A DNA stretch of 63,326 bases, counting the filler, from Octopus bimaculoides (taxonomy: Eukaryota), in NCBI RefSeq assembly GCF_001194135.2. It is 7 parts of 7 records of this genome, joined end to end, with 100 filler letters (N's around TTAATTAATTAA, not from the genome) between each part and the next. Parts side by side here need not be neighbours in the genome. Positions count along the whole stretch, not along the records: positions 14,332 to 25,674 come from NC_068994.1; 6 more parts are not named here. One strand, written 5' to 3'. The first letter of the stretch is position 1. The number at the start of each line of letters is the position of its first letter. This document shows positions 14,332 through 26,054 of the stretch, in pieces. The position numbers were made by a program, and so were the translations under genes. The notes beneath the pieces are model-generated. The model did not search any database. It worked only from the letters and a program-made list of their open reading frames with translations, and was not told the origin of the DNA.

Positions 14332-14492
14332 TCTGCTGTAATAATACACATACACATACATACTTTTCTTTGTACGACGGCCTGTCTTTGATTATGTTCT
14401 TATATGTCGCATTCACACTCTCACACAGACATACATCTTTAACACTACAATAAATATCTCTGTTATTCATCTTATACGGTTGTGGTCTTTCA

Positions 14493-14668
14493 TTACTGGT
14501 CATCTATGTTATCGTCGCATAACATATCATCTATATCATCATTTGATATATATTTGTATGTTCGACCGTGCGACGCGTTTAAATAAAAGGAGTCCTCTGT
14601 TTTTCCATTCGTCACCATTGCTCCTTTTATGAGTTCGCACGGTCGTCCCTTACAGTTCGTTAAAAGTG
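14493..14668 (-). CDS. Candidate distal terminal coding exon of the CBM14 gene (Asp-rich tail)
   Basis: Acceptor tttgttttacatattcAG (14670-14669). The phase-1 frame is open for 57 codons, (T)LLTNCKGRPCELIKGAMVTNGKTEDSFYLNASHGRTYKYISNDDIDDMLCDDNIDDQ, and ends in tandem stops TAA TGA. The frame is compatible with the exon-2 donor; there is no transcript evidence. Confidence 0.55.
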
Positions 14669-16576
14669 CTGAATATGTAAAACAAATACCTTTCTACCAT
14701 CGTGTACCATATAAAGGTTATAAGAACAAGAGAAAAGTTTTCAATATGCTGTCCTTTATAATAATATTTATTCGGCTGAGTCTAACGGTTGTTCTCTCAA
14801 TCAGACGTGTATATATGCGTGTGTGTGTTGTGAGAGTGTTATGTTGTGAGAATGTGTGTGTGTGTGTATGTGGGGGGTATATGTATACATGTATGTCTCC
14901 AAGCATGAATGTATGTACATACGTCTTTACCTACCTACATACATAGATACATACATACGTGCATACATATGTACATACATACTTGCATGCATACATACAT
15001 ACATACACACATGCTTACAATTCTGCCTGCTCCCCACCTTAATTATGTTAAATAGGGCTGGCCTTGGGCAAACAACAACGAAAATAAAATTATATTTCCC
15101 ATGGTGGCAAAATATTTTCATTAACACAGAAAGACAGCAGAGTGACGCCGTTTGTTGTAGTAGTTCGAAAGATGAAAGAGGAGAGTGAAATATTTTATCT
15201 GAATAAATCAGGGGAAGCTAAGCTAAGACAGGAGAAAAGGAAAAAGTAAAAATTGAGAGAATGAGAAAACTGAGAGTTTGAAAATGGAGGGAATGAAAAC
15301 GAGAACGAAAACACTATGCTGCTTTTTTATACTAGACCATTATAGTATTGTCTTAGATACACCAGCACATTAATACTTTCATTGTTGTTGTTATAAATAT
15401 CATTTCCTGCATCATAACCATCATCAGTATCACCATCATAAACACCATAGTTACTGCCATTATCACCATTATTTTTATGAACATCATAAATTTCTTGAGC
15501 TTTATTATTTATTAATGAGTATTTCGATTCAATTATCTATTAAACATTAAACCAATTCTTGGACCTTTTCCGTTTAATTGCATCTTTGGAAATTTTAATG
15601 TTTAGTAAATATTTTAAAATTTGGTGATTCTACAGTGAATCTCAGGCGATAAGTCACTTTTTCCAGAAAAAATCTTTTTAAAAGTTACAGAGGTTTACCC
15701 AGTCAGAAAAACAGGATTTAGATGTCATTTTGAGCGTGACTTCGCGTGTTGTTCACTGTAAACAAATGAAATATTGGAGGAACTCTTCTTTACGCACGCC
15801 ATATAACCCCACAAAACTATATATATACATATATATATACATACATATATATANNNNNNNNNNNNNNNNNNNNNNNNNNNNNNNNNNNNNNNNNNNNNNN
15901 NNNNNNNNNNNNNNNNNNNNNNNNNNNNNNNNNNNNNNNNNNNNNNNNNNNNNNNNNNNNNNNNNNNNNNNNNNNNNNNNNNNNNNNNNNNNNNNNNNNN
16001 NNNNNNNNNNNNNNNNNNNNNNNNNNNNNNNNNNNNNNNATATATTAGTTTTCAGGAAAATTTTGTAAATTTGTATTCCTCACGGAAAATTATACAATTA
16101 TGCAAAAATAAGAACAAGAATTAGTGTGTAAATGAAGGGCCATTTAACTATTATTTTTGGTACATCTCACGACTACCTCATACCTCATGTATTTTAAGCA
16201 TTTAATAAGCGAAAAATGACCACGTAGGAAAGCAGCTTGGTAACAGCTTGTCTTGTTACTATGGAAACAGGCACCTATATGCCTGTGGCTTTGGATTGGA
16301 TAAAATTGCAAATTTTAAAGGTTATTAACTCTTTGTTGAATTATGGCAAAAATAAATGTCATGCCAATGATTACTATACAAGACAACACCAATATTCCAA
16401 ATATAAAAATCAATTGGAACTCAAATTGAAGAAACTTGAAAGTGGCAACCAAAGAGAAAATATATCAATTCCTACAAGAACTTCAACCCATATTTGTATG
16501 GTGCTGATATTAGAGTTGCCAGGAATCACTTGCACCAAGCTAAAATGTTATAAGAAATCCAGCTACTGAACTATCA

Positions 16577-16584
16577 TCATATTC
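16577..16584 (-). CDS. Alternative proximal terminal exon start (adds Arg-Ile-stop), followed by possible 3' UTR
   Basis: Pyrimidine-rich acceptor aatttctgcctttcttAG (16586-16585), 300 nt below exon 2. Phase 1 gives A|GA ATA TGA. A possible ATTAAA polyA signal lies at 16206-16201. Confidence 0.35.
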
Positions 16585-16886
16585 CTAAGAAAGGCAGAAA
16601 TTCTGCTTTTATATACATTTTTGTTCAAACTATATACACACACACACACATATATATATACATATAATATATATATATACATAAAATATATATATACATA
16701 TAGATATATATATGAANNNNNNNNNNNNNNNNNNNNNNNNNNNNNNNNNNNNNNNNNNNNNNNNNNNNNNNNNNNNNNNNNNNNNNNNNNNNNNNNNNNN
16801 NNNNNNNNNNNNNNNNTCCATTGAATGTATATACATATGTATATACATTCAATTTTATCAAAGTAAACACAATCAGTTATACTTAC

Positions 16887-17048
16887 TTGGAACACATGGG
16901 ACATCAGCTGCATTAGCACAGACAAAGTAATCACTGAAATATGAGCCGGTAGCACATTTGAAAAGTTCCTGCGATTGTCCAGTGCATTGGTAGAATAGTT
17001 CACAGCGTTCAGGATGCCTGCAGAATGGGGCTGTACCACATATACAAG
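16887..17048 (-). CDS. Exon 2: chitin-binding type-2 domain (CBM14 / peritrophin-A / ChtBD2)
   Basis: 162-nt exon between acceptor ttttctaccattctAG (17050-17049) and donor A|GTAAGT (16886-16881), phase 1/1. It encodes (A)CICGTAPFCRHPERCELFYQCTGQSQELFKCATGSYFSDYFVCANAADVPCVP, with the HPxxC-x5-C-x9-C-x11-C-x7-C spacing and aromatic residues typical of CBM14. Confidence 0.9.
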
Positions 17049-17124
17049 CTAGAATGGTAGAAAATAAACAGAATGATGAGACAGATAAGTATTTGTATAA
17101 TATAGGTTTCAAATTATGGCACAA

Positions 17125-17290
17125 GACCACCATTTGCAGGATAGGGGTAAGTTGATTACATCACCCCCAGTGCTCTACTGATATTATTTTATCGACCACA
17201 AAAGGATGAAAGGTAAAGTCAAACTTAGCGGAATCTGAACTCAGAACGTAAAGGCGGATGAAATGCCGCTAAGCATCTTGCCTTAGATGT
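17125..17290 (-). mobile_element. Octopus tRNA-derived SINE, family A (intronic)
   Basis: Matches the reverse complement of 21790-22015 (GATGAAAGGTAAAGTC, GAACTCAGAACGTAAAG, GAAATGCCGCTAAGCA). Confidence 0.8.
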
Positions 17291-18062
17291 GTTATATAGC
17301 TGGTGAGATAATACATAAGATAAATTGTTTTATAGTATTTGCGTTTTTTCCCTTTACTTTCCAATTCTAATCCCGAGAGAAGCAAATCTATTGCTAAAAT
17401 ATTTACTGGTCAGGGTTAGGTGTTCAATTAAGTCAGTACAAAATTAGCTTTGTGCTAATTTATCATAACTTTTTACAGGCCTGAAGAACATTTTAGCCCT
17501 GTTTGCCCCACATCAATTGAAAAAATAAAACTTTCTTTGAAAACATTCCGGGTGGGGAGATTTAATTATCTCCTAATAACATCGGATTCTCAATAAAAAC
17601 AAAGCCTTTGCACCAAGGTAAATTAGATATTTAATATATTTTTCAAACCAGTCAGAATCTTTTCAAATCAGTCACAATAACAAAATTACTTAATGAGGAG
17701 AATACACGTTTGTCTATGCCAACTCTAGTATTGACACTATTAGAGAACGCATAAGGAAGTCTCAATTTACAAACAGATTAACTCTTCATAATTTGACAGT
17801 CCCTTCTCTTTGTTTAAGGCAGCGGTCGCCACGACTAAGAAACATACAACTATCAAGTCGATTCCTCTATGCGGGATCGATGTTCAGTTCCATCTTCCAA
17901 GACCTGAATATTGCAATACTCATTAAACTGTCCTTAATAGTAAAGACTTTGATTTAGATCAAAATGAATCAAATGTAAAAAGCAAATGGCGATATAATTC
18001 TTGCAAAAAGATGTAATCCGGAATACTAATGAAAGAAATTAGTTAAGTAGCAGTAATAATTG

Positions 18063-19025
18063 GGATCTTTTCATGGGAAACTCGATTAATTAATTTTCTT
18101 TAACTAAACACTTTGAAACTCCGTGTACTGATAGAATGTGTCATATAGAACATCTTTTACTCTTAGCGTTATTGAGAAAAGTTTCTATTTACGAAGTTAT
18201 TTCGTGTTAAGGTTGTCGTATTTCGGTAATTTCAACCAATCAATGACGTGTATTCAACTGAATAAAATTACTGCAGTTATTTGTTAACAACAACTTCAGG
18301 CGGTGTATATTTCGTTTGTCACTGTTATTTATGACATCGTTCGTGCGTTTGTAGTAGTTTTAGCTTTACGGTTTTAGGGTTATGGTTAGGGTTAGGGTTT
18401 TAGGGTTATGGTTGGGGTTTTAGGGTTAAGGTTACGGAAAAAGGGAAAAATGAAGAAATTGAGCGGGAGGGGTAAGGGGAGGCCAACAAATTTCAAAATT
18501 CCGATTTTTGGCAATTTTCCGGAATCTCTGTATCCGAAAAGCTGGGTTTTTGGCAAAAAAATTTTTTAAGAAACAATAACTTGCGAGAAAATGTGGGCGG
18601 AGAGAGTCTTTCCGAAAATAGTAGCTGAAAAACAGGAAAAAAGCCTAAAAGCAGTAGAAATGCACGAACGATTATGGTGGTGTCATGAAGTTAACGTGTT
18701 TCAGATACACTCGTTTATTCATACGAACGTAACTGAGATGAAATATGTCATAAATAACAGTGACAAGCGAAATATACACCGCCTGAAGTTGTTGTTGACA
18801 AACAACAGCAGTAATTCTATTCAGCTGAATGCACGTCATTGATTGGTTGAAATTACCGAAATACAACAACTTTAACACGAAATAACTTCGAAAATAGAAA
18901 CTTTTCTCAACAACGCTAAGAGTAAAAGACGTTCTATATGACACATTCTACCAGTATCCGAAGTTCCAAAGTGTTTAGTTAAAGAAAATTAATTAATCGA
19001 GCTTCCCATGAAAAGGAAAAGGTCC
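18063..19025. mobile_element. Mutator(MULE)-like non-autonomous foldback element, ~270-bp TIRs, 9-bp TSD
   Basis: 18063-~18335 is the reverse complement of ~18746-19025. Termini are GGATCTTTTC...GAAAAGGTCC, flanked by identical TAATAATTG at 18054-18062 and 19026-19034. A 9-bp TSD with long TIRs is the Mutator signature. Confidence 0.85.
18370..18435 (+). repeat. Degenerate telomere-like (TTAGGG) repeats inside the foldback element
   Basis: ggttttagggttatggttagggttagggttttagggttatggttggggttttagggttaagg. Confidence 0.7.
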
Positions 19026-20273
19026 TAATAATTGTGGTATATTTACCGTAACATTATTTCAAACATTAAGTTATCTAATTTTTTGTTTCCGTTACAGATC
19101 CTGTAACTTAAAGAATTCACCTTCCTATCGTATATTTAGAGTAAACCAGCTTAGTAGTAGCCATCTCTCCAAGTCACACACTGATTAGTAATTCATACCA
19201 GCCCAGAATAAATAATTACCATTATTTTATGGAACTAAATGACTTCCCCATGGTCTCAGTGCAGCACCGATAACGGAATCCAAAATAGAGAGCCTTCCAT
19301 CAGTAATCTAATAACTGGTAAATTCTAAACTCGGATATCGTGTCTCATCATCAAATAAAAATAGCATTCAAATTCATTTCTTTTGACTACGTAAAAGGAC
19401 TTGTAGTTTAGAGTGGGATAAAGAACCAGTATTCATAAGGTTTCCAGTCGCACTGACGGTACAAGTAAAAGGAAATTGCTTAGTTTAGGATTTGAAGCCG
19501 CCAACCACATTTATATTATACATACCTAATAAACTTGTGACTACGTCGCAGGTTTATTAGAAATAAGAAAATGATGTGATAATATGCATGCCATTCTTTT
19601 GTAAGCGATATCTGCTGTAAGGGTGAAGTGAAATGGTTAATGCCTTGTATCGAAACCGGGTTGCAAACTCCGTTCTCCGTTAGTTTCCTGTGAACAAACT
19701 GCCCAGGTACAGTTATGGAATTAAAAAAAACTTCTGGATTCAAGCTGTATCTGAACAATAAAGAGGCACGACTGCTCTGCTTAATAGTATACTTATTCAA
19801 ACATTAGACTTTTAATGTAATATAAAGTTTTAGTGTAACAATATCTCATCTGAAAACCTTAGATATGTAAAGCAAATGTTTACCAGTATCACATCTTAAG
19901 TTAATCTAAAAATAAGCATCGTTTTTAAAACTCTGAATTCCTGGACCAGAAAGAAATCAACTTTTTGTTGATCAGGTACGTAGTCATTTCAATAGATTTT
20001 GATGTATTAAGAGCATTTATTTTATTCACCCTCTTGAGAGCCACAAGACTATTTCAGATAGAATCTTCACGACAAAGACTGTAACGAATCGATGTTTTCC
20101 CCTAGGATTTACCATATTCAGTCTTTCATGGGTACACACTGCATAGGACACAACAGACTTGTTATACTAGCATTGGTTTATAGTGATCTTGAACGTTTGA
20201 ACTGAGGGAATATTTATAAGGTGATTTAGAGAAATCAAAGTAACAACAAATTTTGAAATATCTAACTACTTAC

Positions 20274-20334
20274 CTCCGTTGCAAGTTACTATCCCTAAAG
20301 ATAGTATAAGACAAATCGCGAGAAAGTTTTGCAT
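20274..20334 (-). CDS. Exon 1 (signal peptide) of a secreted CBM14 chitin-binding protein gene
   Basis: Minus strand reads ...AAAA ATG CAA AAC TTT...: MQNFLAICLILSLGIVTCNG plus 1 nt, then a canonical donor G|GTAAGT (20273-20268). It has a hydrophobic core and small residues at candidate cleavage sites. The phase-1 donor matches the phase-1 CBM14 exon, and a TATA box and Inr lie just upstream. Confidence 0.85.
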
Positions 20335-20399
20335 TTTTGCTGGTGTGTGAGTATATGTATTGACATATAACTTCGTACAAAGTTCTTTAGTGCAAGAAA

Positions 20400-20440
20400 G
20401 CAAACTGCGAGCATTTGTCAAAATCATGTATTTATATAGA
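20400..20440 (-). promoter_or_regulatory. Core promoter of the CBM14 gene: TATA box and initiator
   Basis: Minus-strand TATATAAA at 20438-20431. An Inr-like GCAGTTT has its A at 20406, 32 nt downstream of the first T of the TATA box, predicting a ~72-nt 5' UTR before the ATG at 20334. Confidence 0.7.
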
Positions 20441-21789
20441 ACGAAGCATATGAAAGTCGTATACAATTCATGTGCATTTACACGTGTTTACGTAAGAATG
20501 TATTATTATTATTATTATCATTTCCGAAAAGGGAGGAGCTAATACGTGTCTTGTTACTTATCTAGATTTTCCTACGCTCAAGAATGCTTAGTTGCCACGT
20601 GCTAGATTTAACAACTCCTCAATCAATTTGGCATTCTGATGAATAAATAGGAGAAAGCTATATTAGAATTATAAAAGGAATTGTTTGAAAAAAAAAATAA
20701 TCGTGTTTTTAAGAGTTGTATTTGTTTTTATATGCTCAAATTCCTTAAAGGAATATGCTTTTCAGAATATTATATGAAACAAAAAATTCTCCCTAAATAT
20801 TCACTCACTCGTGAATATATTACTATACCATTGAAACATGTTCCTTAACTTTAAACCAGTTTGAACTTGTTTTATTATTTCACTATTTTTGTTTTATTAA
20901 ATCAATGATTGACAATAAAAGGAATCTAAAAAAAAAAATGAAGAGATCGTCTCGTTTCATCTGATAGTTTTTAAAACCTTACCACAATCTACACGTATGA
21001 CAAGCGGAACATAGTACCACCCCCAAGATGTGATCCACTGTTCTCATGCTTCAATATCTGGTAGCTTATTGAAGTGAGAACCGACGCTGTAGCTAAATAA
21101 TTTTGCAATGGGAATTTTTCCTTCTGATAAGGAGGGGAAAACCTGATATTCTTTTTTTTTTCTTTCTTGTTTTCCCACCGCATTACAAACAGACACCCAA
21201 TTTCCAGCTTTTACTTTATTCTTCAATAACCTGTTCTTCAAATTTATACATTTCGAAAAACTGTACATTATCTATTGTCCACACAAGCTTAAACCTTATA
21301 TATCAGAAGAATAGGTTGTATAGAAAGACAATAAACATCGAAAGGCAATTAGGTGCAAAGAGTAGATTTTATATACGATACGTGTGTATATGTACATAAG
21401 TGTTTGTGTATAAGCAGAAATGTATATTTCGATGAATCACAATGAACACCCACGAAAATTAGTTGGTTTCAGAATGATTTCACGCAGAATGCAAAATAGT
21501 GTTCGAATTTTAAAAAGAAAAACGTTCCGACATTATACTCTTGAATTTCTCATTAAACATTTATAGATATGCAAATTGCAATACCATTCAAATTCAAATT
21601 GCAGCGTAAGATGTTAAAATTATAAGCCCTGCTTGTAATCGTTTTAGATAAAATCAAATTTAATTGAAAATTAAATTTTACTTCGTATGACTTTCTCTGA
21701 ATTTCTTTTAACTTCAAATTATCCATAACTCTATACATAGAGAAGGTTTTCATTTGCTTTTTCTACATCCCATTGAGTAATAAAACTCA

Positions 21790-22015
21790 ATTCAATAATT
21801 GGATTACACAAGGCGGCGAGTTGGCAGCAACGTTAGCATTCCAGGTGAAATGCTTAGCGGTATTTCGCCTGTCCTTACGTTCTGAGTTCAAATTCCGCCG
21901 AGGTCGACTTTGTCTTCCATCCTTTCGGGGTTGATAAATTAAGTACCAGTTGTGTACTGGGATCGATCTAATCGACTGGCCCTCTCCCCATAAATTTCGG
22001 GCCTTGTGCCTAAGA
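21790..22015 (+). mobile_element. Octopus tRNA-derived SINE, family A, full length
   Basis: GGCGGCGAGTTGGCAG (A-box-like) ... GAGTTCAAATTCC (B box), then GTCGACTTTG..CATCCTTTCGGGGTTGATAAATTAAGTACCAG. At least 9 related copies occur in the window. Confidence 0.85.
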
Positions 22016-22389
22016 AATGGAAAATACCAAACATTTTCTTGGACAATTGAATCCGTATAGTAATAAATATTTCTTTTTAGCAGCATTTTTTTTTTCGTAT
22101 TATCTATAATACTGGTTTTAAATTCTTTTTGTAAACGCACAATTATTCGGAACACAAATATTAATTTAGTCTGCATATTGACGCACTAAGTGCATCAATT
22201 AATGATTCCTGATTTGAGCTATCGATAAATGTAATTATCTTCCCCAATAATTTCGGAAAAGAAAAGAATAGGGTTCCTTTTTATTTACCACATTATAACA
22301 GTCATTAAAATAACAGTCATTAAAATGGTCTTTCGGCTCCCTCCATATCATTGGTAGGGCAAGAAGCATGGACTTTCCTTATTATTGAA

Positions 22390-23008
22390 CCAGTCACGAA
22401 AGCTATTTCAGCAAGCTGAGCAGATAAAATGTGGTGTCCATAGCTTGTCCTGATCTCCAAGAGGATAGTCAAAATATAGCATATAAATCTTCTTTATCTC
22501 TGGTGTTGTTGTACGTTTTTGACCTTTCACAAATTGTCTACAGACATTAAAAAACACATCAGGACGATTTCTACACTGTCTTGATATTGTTAACACTGTA
22601 AAACAAGTAAGGAAATAGATACAAACGGTTTTACTTATATTGAATTTGAGATGACTAAAAATTTTATCAGAGCAATTATGACTGGACAATTTCAGATGTT
22701 GAAATACTTATTTCATCAGGCAAAACTGGATTAGTTAGTTTAAGATGATGAAATATTGCATCTGAACTATGCAGCAATGAAAAGTATAATTTATTTTAAA
22801 GGTATGCTTCCATGATGTAAATTAAATACATACATACACGTCATTAACTGGAATTTTTATATCATGCATGAACTAAAACCAAAAAAACTTTCCTATCTTG
22901 AAAGCAGTACGTGATGTCAAAAAACTAATTGTATATTTGAAATCAGCATTAAAAACTACACTAAGTACACCTTAACATATGCTTGATGAAAAATACTTGT
23001 TGACCAGT

Positions 23009-23009
<1 letters not shown>
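22390..23009 (-). mobile_element. DNA transposon 5' remnant, Chapaev3-like (CMC group) transposase N-terminus
   Basis: Terminus CACTGGTCAACAA at 23009. Downstream frame ISRQCRNRPDVFFNVCRQFVKGQKRTTTPEIKKIYMLYFDYPLGDQDKLWTPHFICSAC fits the C-x-N-x-PD-x-FCY-x-CG...LGDQDK-x-WAPH-x2-C-x2-C pattern. The superfamily name is from memory. Confidence 0.6.
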
Positions 23010-23051
<42 letters not shown>

Positions 23052-23059
23052 TAATAAAA

Positions 23060-24937
23060 GAGAAAAGATTTATCGATTCTCAACGAAATTAGTAGACAAT
23101 CAACACAACTAAGTAACAAGAAGAAAACAAAAATACTGTACGAATACAACATTACAGAAAAAGACTTACCTGAGGCAAAAGAAAAGCTAAAGCAAGATAT
23201 CCTTGCCAAAGCACAAAGGATCCGCCGGTATGAGAAACGCCAACGTTTCTTTGAACAAAACAAACAGTTCAAATCCAACCCCAAAAAAACTCTACCTAGA
23301 ACTGTTCTGCATGGCACTCACACCTTTAACTGAATTGCAAAATAGAACTGGATGCGGATACAAATGTTACGGCAAAACAGTAAGCCACCTTTTATATATG
23401 GATGACCTAAATTTATACGCTAGAAATGACAAAGAGCTGGAAACACTACTACAGACAGTACATGGCTTTACCAAGGAAATAGATATGAAATTCGGATTAG
23501 AAAAATGTGCCAAAGCAACCCTGAAAAGAGGAAAATTAGTTAAAAGTAGCAACATCACACTAGATAAAGCCAATAAAATAAGAGACGAAAGCCAGCCATA
23601 CAAATATTTAGGAGTCAATGAACTAGATATGATACAAAACACACAAATGAAAGAAAAAATAAAGAAAGAGTACTATAGACGAGTTAGATCAATACTAAAA
23701 ACAGAGCTCAATGCTAAAAACAAGATAATAGGTATTAACACTTTAGCTGTCCCAGTTATAAGTTACAGCTACAATATCCTTAACTGGACACTAAACGAAC
23801 NNNNNNNNNNNNNNNNNNNNNNNNNNNNNNNNNNNNNNNNNNNNNNNNNNNNNNNNNNNNNNNNNNNNNNNNNNNNNNNNNNNNNNNNNNNNNNNNNNNN
23901 NNNNNNNNNNNNNNNNNNNNNNNNNNNNNNNNNNNNNNNNNNNNNNNNNNNNNNNNNNNNNNNNNNNNNNNNNNNNNNNNNNNNNNNNNNNNNNNNNNNN
24001 NNNNNNNNNNNNNNNNNNNNNNNNNNNNNNNNNNNNNNNNNNNNNNNNNNNNNNNNNNNNNNNNNNNNNNNNNNNNNNNNNNNNNNNNNNNNNNNNNNNN
24101 NNNNNNNNNNNNNNNNNNNNNNNNNNNNNNNNNNNNNNNNNNNNNNNNNNNNNNNNNNNNNNNNNNNNNNNNNNNNNNNNNNNNNNNNNNNNNNNNNNNN
24201 NNNNNNNNNNNNNNNNNNNNNNNNNNNNNNNNNNNNNNNNNNNNNNNNNNNNNNNNNNNNNNNNNNNNNNNNNNNNNNNNNNNNNNNNNNNNNNNNNNNN
24301 NNNNNNNNNNNNNNNNNNNNNNNNNNNNNNNNNNNNNNNNNNNNNNNNNNNNNNNNNNNNNNNNNNNNNNNNNNNNNNNNNNNNNNNNNNNNNNNNNNNN
24401 NNNNNNNNNNNNNNNNNNNNNNNNNNNNNNNNNNNNNNNNNNNNNNNNNNNNNNNNNNNNNNNNNNNNNNNNNNNNNNNNNNNNNNNNNNNNNNNNNNNN
24501 NNNNNNNNNNNNNNNNNNNNNNNNNNNNNNNNNNNNNNNNNNNNNNNNNNNNNNNNNNNNNNNNNNNNNNNNATCAATACCAGCAGATGACAACGTTTCC
24601 CTAAAAGAAATGGAAAAACTTTCAAAATACAAAGACCTGGAAATAGAGGTAACCCGAATGTGGAATCTAAAAACAGAAACAATTCCTATCATAGTAGGTG
24701 CCTTAGGTACAATAAAAAAATATTCAGACAAATACATAACAAAAACACCAGGACTTACAAATATATATAACATACAGAAAATTGCACTACTGGGCACTGC
24801 ACACATCCTACGCAAAACACTTTCAATACAGTTACCATAAGAGCATCACAGCAAACCACAGCACATACCCAAGGCACACAGAGCTGCGCTCGGTAGTGAA
24901 GTGAAAACACGTTATAAAAATAAAACTACTGAACAAT
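23060..24937 (+). mobile_element. R4/Dong-type retrotransposon, internally deleted (copy E)
   Basis: Pre-RT KQDILAKAQRIRRYEKRQRFFEQNKQF is fused to late RT FCMALTPL...SHLLYMDDLNLYA...MKFGLEKCA...YKYLG. After an N gap come the RLE C-terminus and 3' UTR. It is flanked by (TAA)n at 23010-23055 and 24935-24947. Confidence 0.92.
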
Positions 24938-24949
24938 AATAATAATAGG

Positions 24950-25512
24950 CCAATCATTATATTGAAAGGCTTCAGACAAAAATCATGCCTCCTCATCGAT
25001 ATGACAGTCCTAATCGACATAAATGTATCTGTCAAGACCTACCAAAAACTGAGCAAATATAAAGATCTTGAAATAGAAATTAGCAAAATGTGGAACCTCA
25101 AGATTAAAGCAATACCTGTTGTCATAATTTTCCTAGGAATGATAGCAAAAGGGGCTGATTATTACCTAGATCAGATACCAGGAAACCGCGCACAATGGCA
25201 GGAATTCAAAAGATAGTACTCATGGGGACTGCCCATATCCTATGTAAAATACTGTCTGTCTAGTCTCAAATTTTAAAACAAACTTATAATTTTCGTATAT
25301 TTTCGTAAATATTCTCTAGAACAATACAATGTGCAAAACCAATTATATGACACCAACTTGAACTTCTAGCTTGTTGTCTCTTGAGGTCTCTTGGTGAGAC
25401 TCGGAGTCAACTTGTACAAATACAAAGCAAAAGTCCACAGCACATATCCAAGGCGCACAGAGCTGCGCTCGGTAGTGAAGTGAAAGCACGTTATAAAAAT
25501 AAAACTACTGAA
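24950..25512 (+). mobile_element. Second R4/Dong-type 3' end (copy F) plus duplicated 3' UTR of the copy E family
   Basis: LLIDMTVLIDINVSVKTYQKLSKYKDLEIEISKMWNLKIKAIPVV (RLE). 25441-25512 repeats 24862-24937 and runs into (TAA)n/(TGA)n. Confidence 0.85.
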
Positions 25513-25558
25513 CAATAATAATAATAATAATAAAGATAATGATAAAAATAATAATGAA

Positions 25559-25606
<48 letters not shown>

Positions 25607-26054
25607 AGAAATAATAATAATGATAATAATGATAATAATAATAATAATAATAATAATAACCAACAGCAGAAGAANNNNNNNNNNNNNNNNNNNNNNNNNN
25701 NNNNNNNNNNNNNNNNNNTTAATTAATTAANNNNNNNNNNNNNNNNNNNNNNNNNNNNNNNNNNNNNNNNNNNNATATATATATATATATATATATATAT
25801 AATACACACACACACATATAGTGAGAGAGAGAGAGAGAGAGAAAAAGAAAGGTAGGATGGACTAAACAGAACAGGAGGAGAGACGTGGGATGGAAGAATC
25901 CTTGAAGAGGTCGCAGGTGTGAGACGAAAGATTTCCATATAATGAACACGTATATATACATATATGTAAGTATATTTATTTACATACATTTATACATATA
26001 CACACATGTATTTATATAGATGTATTATATTATATACATGTATTATATAAATAC

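Follow-up and report, generated by a model that had tools for sequence, protein, structure and literature searches.

A protein composed of a signal peptide, three chitin-binding type-2 (ChtBD2) domains and a Laminin_G3 domain has been described from the eggcase matrix of Argonauta hians and from the shell matrix of Nautilus, and homologues occur in shell-less octopuses, which according to the authors retain the gene “for other, presently unknown, reasons” (bioRxiv 10.1101/2021.07.10.451900; PMC9635652). The window analysed here is a stretch of 63,326 nucleotides (nt), filler included, of Octopus bimaculoides DNA (assembly GCF_001194135.2). The piece studied, positions 14,332–25,674, comes from NC_068994.1, is 100% identical, N runs included, to the O. 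bimaculoides chromosome CM046614.1 (GCA_001194135.2), and has all of its gene features on the minus strand. A preliminary description of this DNA had proposed a compact, secreted and probably poorly annotated gene with a single CBM14 chitin-binding domain. We find that positions 20438–16887 very probably represent the promoter, the signal-peptide exon and the first CBM14 exon of the eight-exon LamG3/Pif-like gene LOC106873033, and that the coding exons of this gene diverge faster between octopus species than its own introns. Positions count along the window; coordinates in comparison loci are prefixed L001 (O. vulgaris), L002 (O. bimaculoides, CM046614.1), L003 (O. sinensis) or L004 (A. hians).

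The RefSeq protein XP_052828695.1 (LOC106873033, O. bimaculoides, 399 amino acids (aa)) contains the joined product of the two exons exactly and continues with NCGGKSRVKDLYNC..., leading into a further pair of cysteine modules and a C-terminal domain rich in beta structure. A splice search on the chromosome sequence rebuilt this protein exactly from eight GT-AG exons, with junctions at 20274/17048 and 16887, over a gene span of about 26.5 kb. Exons 3–8 lie 9.9–20.4 kb past the left edge of the piece, and tblastn within the piece found neither the second CBM14 exon nor the downstream exons of the gene. Exons 2, 3 and 4 are each phase 1-1 and encode one cysteine module each. Searched as a whole, XP_052828695.1 matches the Pfam family CBM_14 (PF01607) at 40.2 bits over three stretches (cut-off 22.1), and the modules scored singly reach 21.4, 28.7 and 16.2 bits in order. 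Module 1 of the A. hians orthologue is the best stretch within a 43.1-bit CBM_14 match. Laminin_G_3 is matched by three of the four orthologue C-terminal domains (best E = 3.3e-8), and A. hians reaches 30.3 bits (cut-off 27.6). No VWA domain was found at E <= 1 in XP_052828695.1 or the A. hians orthologue, and a profile of the LamG-like domain returned nothing significant among PDB sequences.

The two exons within the piece are as the preliminary description had placed them. Exon 1 opens at the ATG at 20334, and its coding part (20274–20334, minus strand), read from the sequence and with the same end as exon 1 of the rebuilt RefSeq model, encodes the 20 aa MQNFLAICLILSLGIVTCNG and supplies the first base of a codon that intron 1 interrupts, before a GTAAGT donor at 20273–20268. 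The peptide shares 18 of its 20 residues with the O. vulgaris and O. sinensis orthologues and is a predicted signal peptide: residues 4–17 have a mean Kyte–Doolittle hydropathy of 2.7 around the core FLAICLILSLGIV, and small residues stand at −3/−1 (V-T-C or C-N-G). Intron 1 (17049–20273, minus strand, 3,225 nt), delimited by the splice model, contains a short interspersed element (SINE) copy and an inverted duplication. It has no N, so the junction from signal peptide to CBM14 module is unaffected by assembly gaps.

Exon 2 (16887–17048, minus strand, 162 nt, phase 1-1) encodes the first CBM14 module, ACICGTAPFCRHPERCELFYQCTGQSQELFKCATGSYFSDYFVCANAADVPCVP, as judged from the sequence, Pfam and the splice model. 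Its acceptor reads ttctag before CT at 17048, and its donor follows 16887 as CCAA before GTAAGT. The CBM14 consensus has six cysteines spaced C-x11-24-C-x5-C-x9-19-C-x10-14-C-x4-14-C, and aromatic residues come after the second cysteine and after the fourth. The exon 2 peptide has eight cysteines (C-x-C-x5-C-x5-C-x5-C-x9-C-x11-C-x7-C), from which a six-cysteine CBM14 pattern can be read, C4-x11-C16-x5-C22-x9-C32-x11-C44-x7-C52, with C2 and C10 as an extra pair; the spacings fall within the consensus, and aromatic residues are present in CELFYQC and GSYF. One eight-cysteine, CBM14-like module is encoded by one symmetric phase-1 exon. The module matched the chitinase CBM14 6g9c among PDB sequences at E = 0.021 and, weakly, the squid chitin-binding beak protein 3, 7bwe, at E = 0.63. 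When 1.84 billion representative proteins were searched exhaustively with HMMER, 100 matches reached E <= 1e-3. The best single-stretch match (P0007) was a 308-aa O. vulgaris protein, aligned over residues 1–72 to query residues 1–72 at 65% identity, and ten further matches that were inspected were all (10/10) strong CBM_14 proteins.

The gene structure recurs in related species. In O. vulgaris all eight exons are collinear and form an intact open reading frame of 368 aa, and the A. hians orthologue GAB1603942.1 has the same eight-exon layout within 11 kb and an intact frame of 383 aa. Seven of the eight exons were found in O. sinensis, exon 7 falling within an assembly gap. The boundaries of exons 1 and 2 are the same in O. 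vulgaris and A. hians, and the exon 2 splice sites are kept in O. vulgaris, where the 3' half of that exon is strongly diverged and the flanking introns are 94% identical. Further searches with the O. vulgaris protein and with a four-species profile returned only octopod clusters, three of them with the profile, and one such gene per species was present in the databases searched. The ten further HMMER matches mentioned above, of 310–410 aa, were considered as possible LamG3 relatives and rejected since all were plain multi-CBM14 proteins, the few with a source name coming from insects. A literature search by accession gave no match.

With this structure at hand, the proposal of a compact gene can be weighed. 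It would be a tachycitin- or mytichitin-like gene with one CBM14 domain, encoding 78 aa if the exon 2 donor is read through or 132 aa if a third exon is added. Splicing exon 1 to exon 2 yields 74 aa, and reading through the donor adds SKYN and a stop codon (16875–16873), giving 78 aa, so that neither product has the 76 aa first modelled. The 78-aa open reading frame does exist and was once annotated: the read-through model is, residue for residue, UniProt A0A0L8FQV8 (O. bimaculoides, “Chitin-binding type-2 domain-containing protein”). The SKYN-stop tail is also present in O. vulgaris, although this is expected from the general conservation of the introns. Against the compact gene, the exon 2 donor is conserved, and gene models from four species splice it to six additional coding exons, which contribute two CBM14 modules and a LamG/ConA-like domain. 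Neither AATAAA nor ATTAAA occurs between exon 2 and the next gap, a distance of 70 nt, or in 600 nt of the gap-free O. vulgaris intron, and hence nothing supports a short isoform. A 294-aa partial entry begins at exon 3, and together the 78-aa and 294-aa entries equal the merged RefSeq protein; they are most simply explained as fragments of one gene that an earlier annotation left unjoined.

The third exon of the 132-aa model (14493–14669, minus strand) was rejected: it has no Pfam match, is absent from XP_052828695.1 and shows no homology to the orthologue proteins. All but 16 nt of it lies outside DNA alignable to O. sinensis, in a contig that belongs 3' of the gene in the sister species. 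Taken together, these observations make a compact single-domain gene barely credible, and LOC106873033 is the reading that we carry forward. The preliminary description had allowed that the domain might turn out to be the tail of a larger protein such as a chitinase; a larger protein there is, and the domain stands at its head, with no chitinase involved. The expectation of a putative secreted, chitin-binding cephalopod protein starting at this site holds by orthology and domain content, although not as a single-domain protein. Nor is the locus unannotated, given that the short form is in UniProt and the full gene in RefSeq. The gene and its family are already known, and the compact gene as first described adds little to them.

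A0A0L8FQV8 surfaced through the exhaustive HMMER search and a cluster listing. A first homologue search with the 78-aa model had found no match, the cluster of this entry being represented by a protein without the N-terminus. A look-up of an 86-aa genomic open reading frame of the piece gave no database entry.

The region upstream of exon 1 has the features of a putative core promoter. As the preliminary description had noted, a TATA box and an initiator (Inr) stand at suitable spacing, and both are present on the minus strand. The TATA box, TATATAAA, occupies 20431–20438 and is identical in O. bimaculoides, O. vulgaris and O. sinensis. An Inr-like GCAGTTT of the CAGT type lies at 20401–20407, read from the sequence like the TATA box, and its A at 20406, the presumed transcription start, is 32 nt past the first T of the TATA box; the element is ACAGTTT in O. 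vulgaris and O. sinensis. Because TATAAA occurs 2.3 times per kb in the piece, the TATA box by itself is weak evidence, and its identity in the three Octopus species is shared by most of the surrounding 330 nt.

The RefSeq coding sequence of XP_052828695.1 opens further upstream, at 20427, with an ATG at 20425–20427. This codon is 4 nt past the TATA box and 31 codons ahead of the MQNF start at 20334, and would place 31 extra aa ahead of the signal peptide. A 1-nt indel shifts the upstream ATG out of frame in both O. vulgaris and O. sinensis, with stops ahead of MQNF, and the orthologue models begin at MQNF or MQF. For these reasons the MQNF start is better supported, and the upstream RefSeq ATG is probably not the true start. 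From MQNF the protein has about 368 aa (399 aa as annotated), and the hydrophobic segment is N-terminal, as a signal peptide needs to be; the RefSeq start would bury it.

Comparison of the orthologues revealed an unusual distribution of differences. Between O. bimaculoides and O. vulgaris, compared exon by exon, flanking introns and untranslated regions are 93.5% identical (3,270/3,499) and coding exons 73.8% (813/1,101). A 5.4-kb alignment of the same pair over exons 3–7 gives 92.8% identity for introns and 73.3% for exons (Fisher p = 1e-52), with a trough in the identity profile at each exon. Exon divergence thus amounts to 27% against 7% for introns, a difference of about four times. The signal-peptide exon, at 92% identity, is outside this accelerated pattern, and the cysteines are kept throughout (24/24). 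In the closer pair O. vulgaris and O. sinensis the same excess is seen: exons differ by 3.0% and flanks by 0.64% (p = 8e-8), with 27 non-synonymous and four synonymous changes, and non-synonymous sites have changed 5.5 times more often than the flanking introns (p = 2e-8). For O. bimaculoides against O. vulgaris, the ratio of non-synonymous to synonymous substitution rates (dN/dS, Nei–Gojobori) is 1.43 overall, rising to 2.2 for the LamG-like part.

One explanation would be decay. Octopus has no external shell, and a shell-matrix gene that had become functionless would drift neutrally towards a dN/dS near 1; individual dN/dS values of 1.3–1.85 are indeed not significantly above 1 (Fisher p = 0.08–0.37). 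A relic should not, however, have kept its open reading frames intact (368 codons in O. bimaculoides and O. vulgaris, 383 aa in A. hians), together with all GT-AG sites and every one of the 24 cysteines. More directly, relaxed constraint cannot be the cause where exons evolve faster than their own introns, and both the fourfold exon excess between the distant pair and the 5.5-fold non-synonymous excess between the close pair go beyond what it could produce. We therefore regard a decaying relic as very improbable.

A second explanation places the cause in the DNA instead of in selection on the protein, as gene conversion from diverged paralogues limited to exons or as a mutational process targeted to exons. 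Where the amino acid has stayed the same, four-fold sites show 14% difference, compared with 7% in introns (p = 0.03), a hint of a modestly raised mutation input in exons. Conversion would, however, need to respect the boundaries of seven separate exons, and the single copy per species in the databases searched speaks against diverged paralogues as donors. The excess also consists mostly of amino-acid replacements, which affect 166 of 366 codons; in 87 of these, two or three bases have changed. Such a process is unlikely, if less so than decay, and diversifying selection on the mature protein is suggested as the best explanation of the exon excess.

It follows as a possibility, to which we give slightly less than even chances, that the LamG3/Pif-like gene of shell-less octopods is no quiet relic and is under intense diversifying selection. 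Elsewhere, the combination of a conserved signal peptide and cysteine scaffold with divergent exons is familiar in toxins, immune receptors and reproductive proteins. If the same applied here, a chitin-binding protein would have been redeployed in an arms race, for example against chitin-bearing pathogens or parasites, in egg or sperm interaction, or in prey handling. The divergence of exons beyond that of introns is the new point of this analysis and bears on why shell-less octopods keep a shell-matrix gene.

What the protein may do can be proposed from its family. The product would begin with a cleavable signal peptide, continue through three CBM14 (ChtBD2) modules knotted by disulfides, and end in a LamG/ConA-like domain with a beta-sandwich fold. 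We infer that it is secreted to the extracellular matrix, where the CBM14 modules would attach it to chitin or chitosan fibrils and the LamG-like domain could serve as a second binding surface, linking chitin to other matrix components. In Octopus, which has no shell, such a role might be played in the stylets, beak, radula, lining of the suckers or gut cuticle.

Several observations count against the assignment to LOC106873033 and its family, or against a structural role. On its own, the exon 2 peptide scores 0.7 bits short of the CBM_14 cut-off, which the whole protein passes. AlphaFold2 models had a mean confidence (pLDDT) of 50.5 for the domain alone, from a single sequence, and of 36.6 for the full protein, from a four-sequence alignment, too poor for a fold search. 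The C-terminal domain of O. bimaculoides itself reaches only 14.8 bits, to Laminin_G_2. All splice junctions rest on gene models and cross-species conservation. PMC9635652, the only paper in which the identifier Ocbimv22010162m was found, cites it for an O. bimaculoides lamG3 gene without giving a sequence, and this may be a locus other than LOC106873033. Finally, matrix proteins with a purely structural task seldom show a dN/dS above 1, so the role may be a different one. Set beside the exact rebuilding of the protein, the shared eight-exon layout and the domain matches, these points still leave LOC106873033 as the very probable identity of the locus.

The public models of this gene differ in ways that the comparison makes visible. 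For O. vulgaris, the model CAI9733052.1 bears the wrong name “3-ketoacyl-CoA thiolase, mitochondrial” and leaves out exons 6 and 7, both of which are intact in the DNA (L001 32630–32726 and 34370–34452). In O. sinensis, a 100-N gap (L003 26225–26324) takes the place of exon 7, and as a result the model XP_029645353.2 (489 aa) closes with a C-terminal tail unrelated to the gene. With the start codon in O. bimaculoides, which is probably wrong, and the old 78-aa fragment, this makes four defective public models. In A. hians a neighbouring gene on the opposite strand (L004 16187–16993, minus strand) also encodes a CBM_14 domain, which hints at a local cluster of chitin-binding genes in that species.

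The assembly itself may have helped to make the locus look compact. Two gaps, 16717–16816 (100 N) and 15854–16039, are 3' of exon 2, within intron 2 as assembled, and are crossed by no reading frame. Intron 2 as scaffolded measures 12,451 nt, of which 6,486 are N. Its start occupies 14332–16886 (minus strand), and only 16817–16886 is demonstrably contiguous with exon 2; these 70 nt are all that can be aligned to the O. vulgaris intron after exon 2. Segments 16040–16716 and 14654–15609 align instead about 10–13 kb 3' of the last exon in O. sinensis (L003 41057–44034), and their O. vulgaris counterpart is about 9.7 kb 3' of the last exon (L001 52638–52957). The contigs keep the order and orientation that they have in the sister species, and the remaining locus is collinear. 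Contigs 14332–15853 and 16040–16716 were thus probably misplaced in scaffolding and put into a gap where they do not belong. In any case, the 100-N gap does not separate continuous DNA, since what lies beyond it maps, in sister species, some 10 kb past the 3' end of the gene. A gap-rich assembly can in this way make the head of a long gene resemble a complete mini-gene.

Repeats are present within and around the gene. The inverted duplication in intron 1 consists of arms at 18067–18342 and 18740–19015 (276 nt, 93% complementary) around a 397-nt spacer with degenerate TTAGGG-like repeats at about 18360–18440, and the arm is single-copy in O. vulgaris (L001 10524–10877). A short interspersed repeat occurs in two opposite-facing copies, at 17148–17283 (minus strand) and 21810–22010 (plus strand), with many more in the O. 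vulgaris locus; ARAGORN and Rfam did not recognise it, and Rfam and tRNA scans of the piece found no RNA feature. Upstream of the gene, a reverse-transcriptase fragment at 23203–24840 (plus strand) matches RVT_1 at 36.9 bits and is broken by a 772-N gap. 3' of it, direct repeats of 92 nt at 24856–24947 and 25435–25526 are 97% identical, each ends in (AAT)n, and they resemble the 3' termini of retroposon copies. Positions 25505–25665 form a long (GAT)n/(AAT)n microsatellite.

Among known systems, the closest are the LamG3/Pif-like proteins of A. hians and Nautilus pompilius and their homologues in Pinctada and Lymnaea, which share with LOC106873033 three consecutive ChtBD2/CBM14 domains, a C-terminal Laminin_G_3 domain and the lack of a VWA domain, and whose signal peptide has a predicted counterpart in it. 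Octopus differs from these systems in having neither shell nor eggcase, and the likeness is one of architecture; the A. hians orthologue may itself be the eggcase protein. Pif and BMSP (Pif97/Pif80 of Pinctada fucata, BMSP of Mytilus) likewise combine a peritrophin-A chitin-binding module with a LamG-like region in a secreted matrix protein, but they also have acidic low-complexity regions and between one and four VWA domains, and LOC106873033 has no VWA match. Tachycitin, mytichitin-CB and the squid beak protein 3 (DgCBP-3, PDB 7bwe) have the same cysteine scaffold as the exon 2 module; they are stand-alone domains of about 60–75 aa, whereas the exon 2 module is followed by two others in a protein of 368 aa. 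In its mode of evolution, LOC106873033 resembles the accelerated genes of conotoxins and snake venoms, with which it shares a conserved signal exon, conserved introns, hyperdivergent mature exons and invariant cysteines. Those genes form large families, whereas LOC106873033 is single-copy per species in the databases searched, and the likeness is one of sequence pattern alone.

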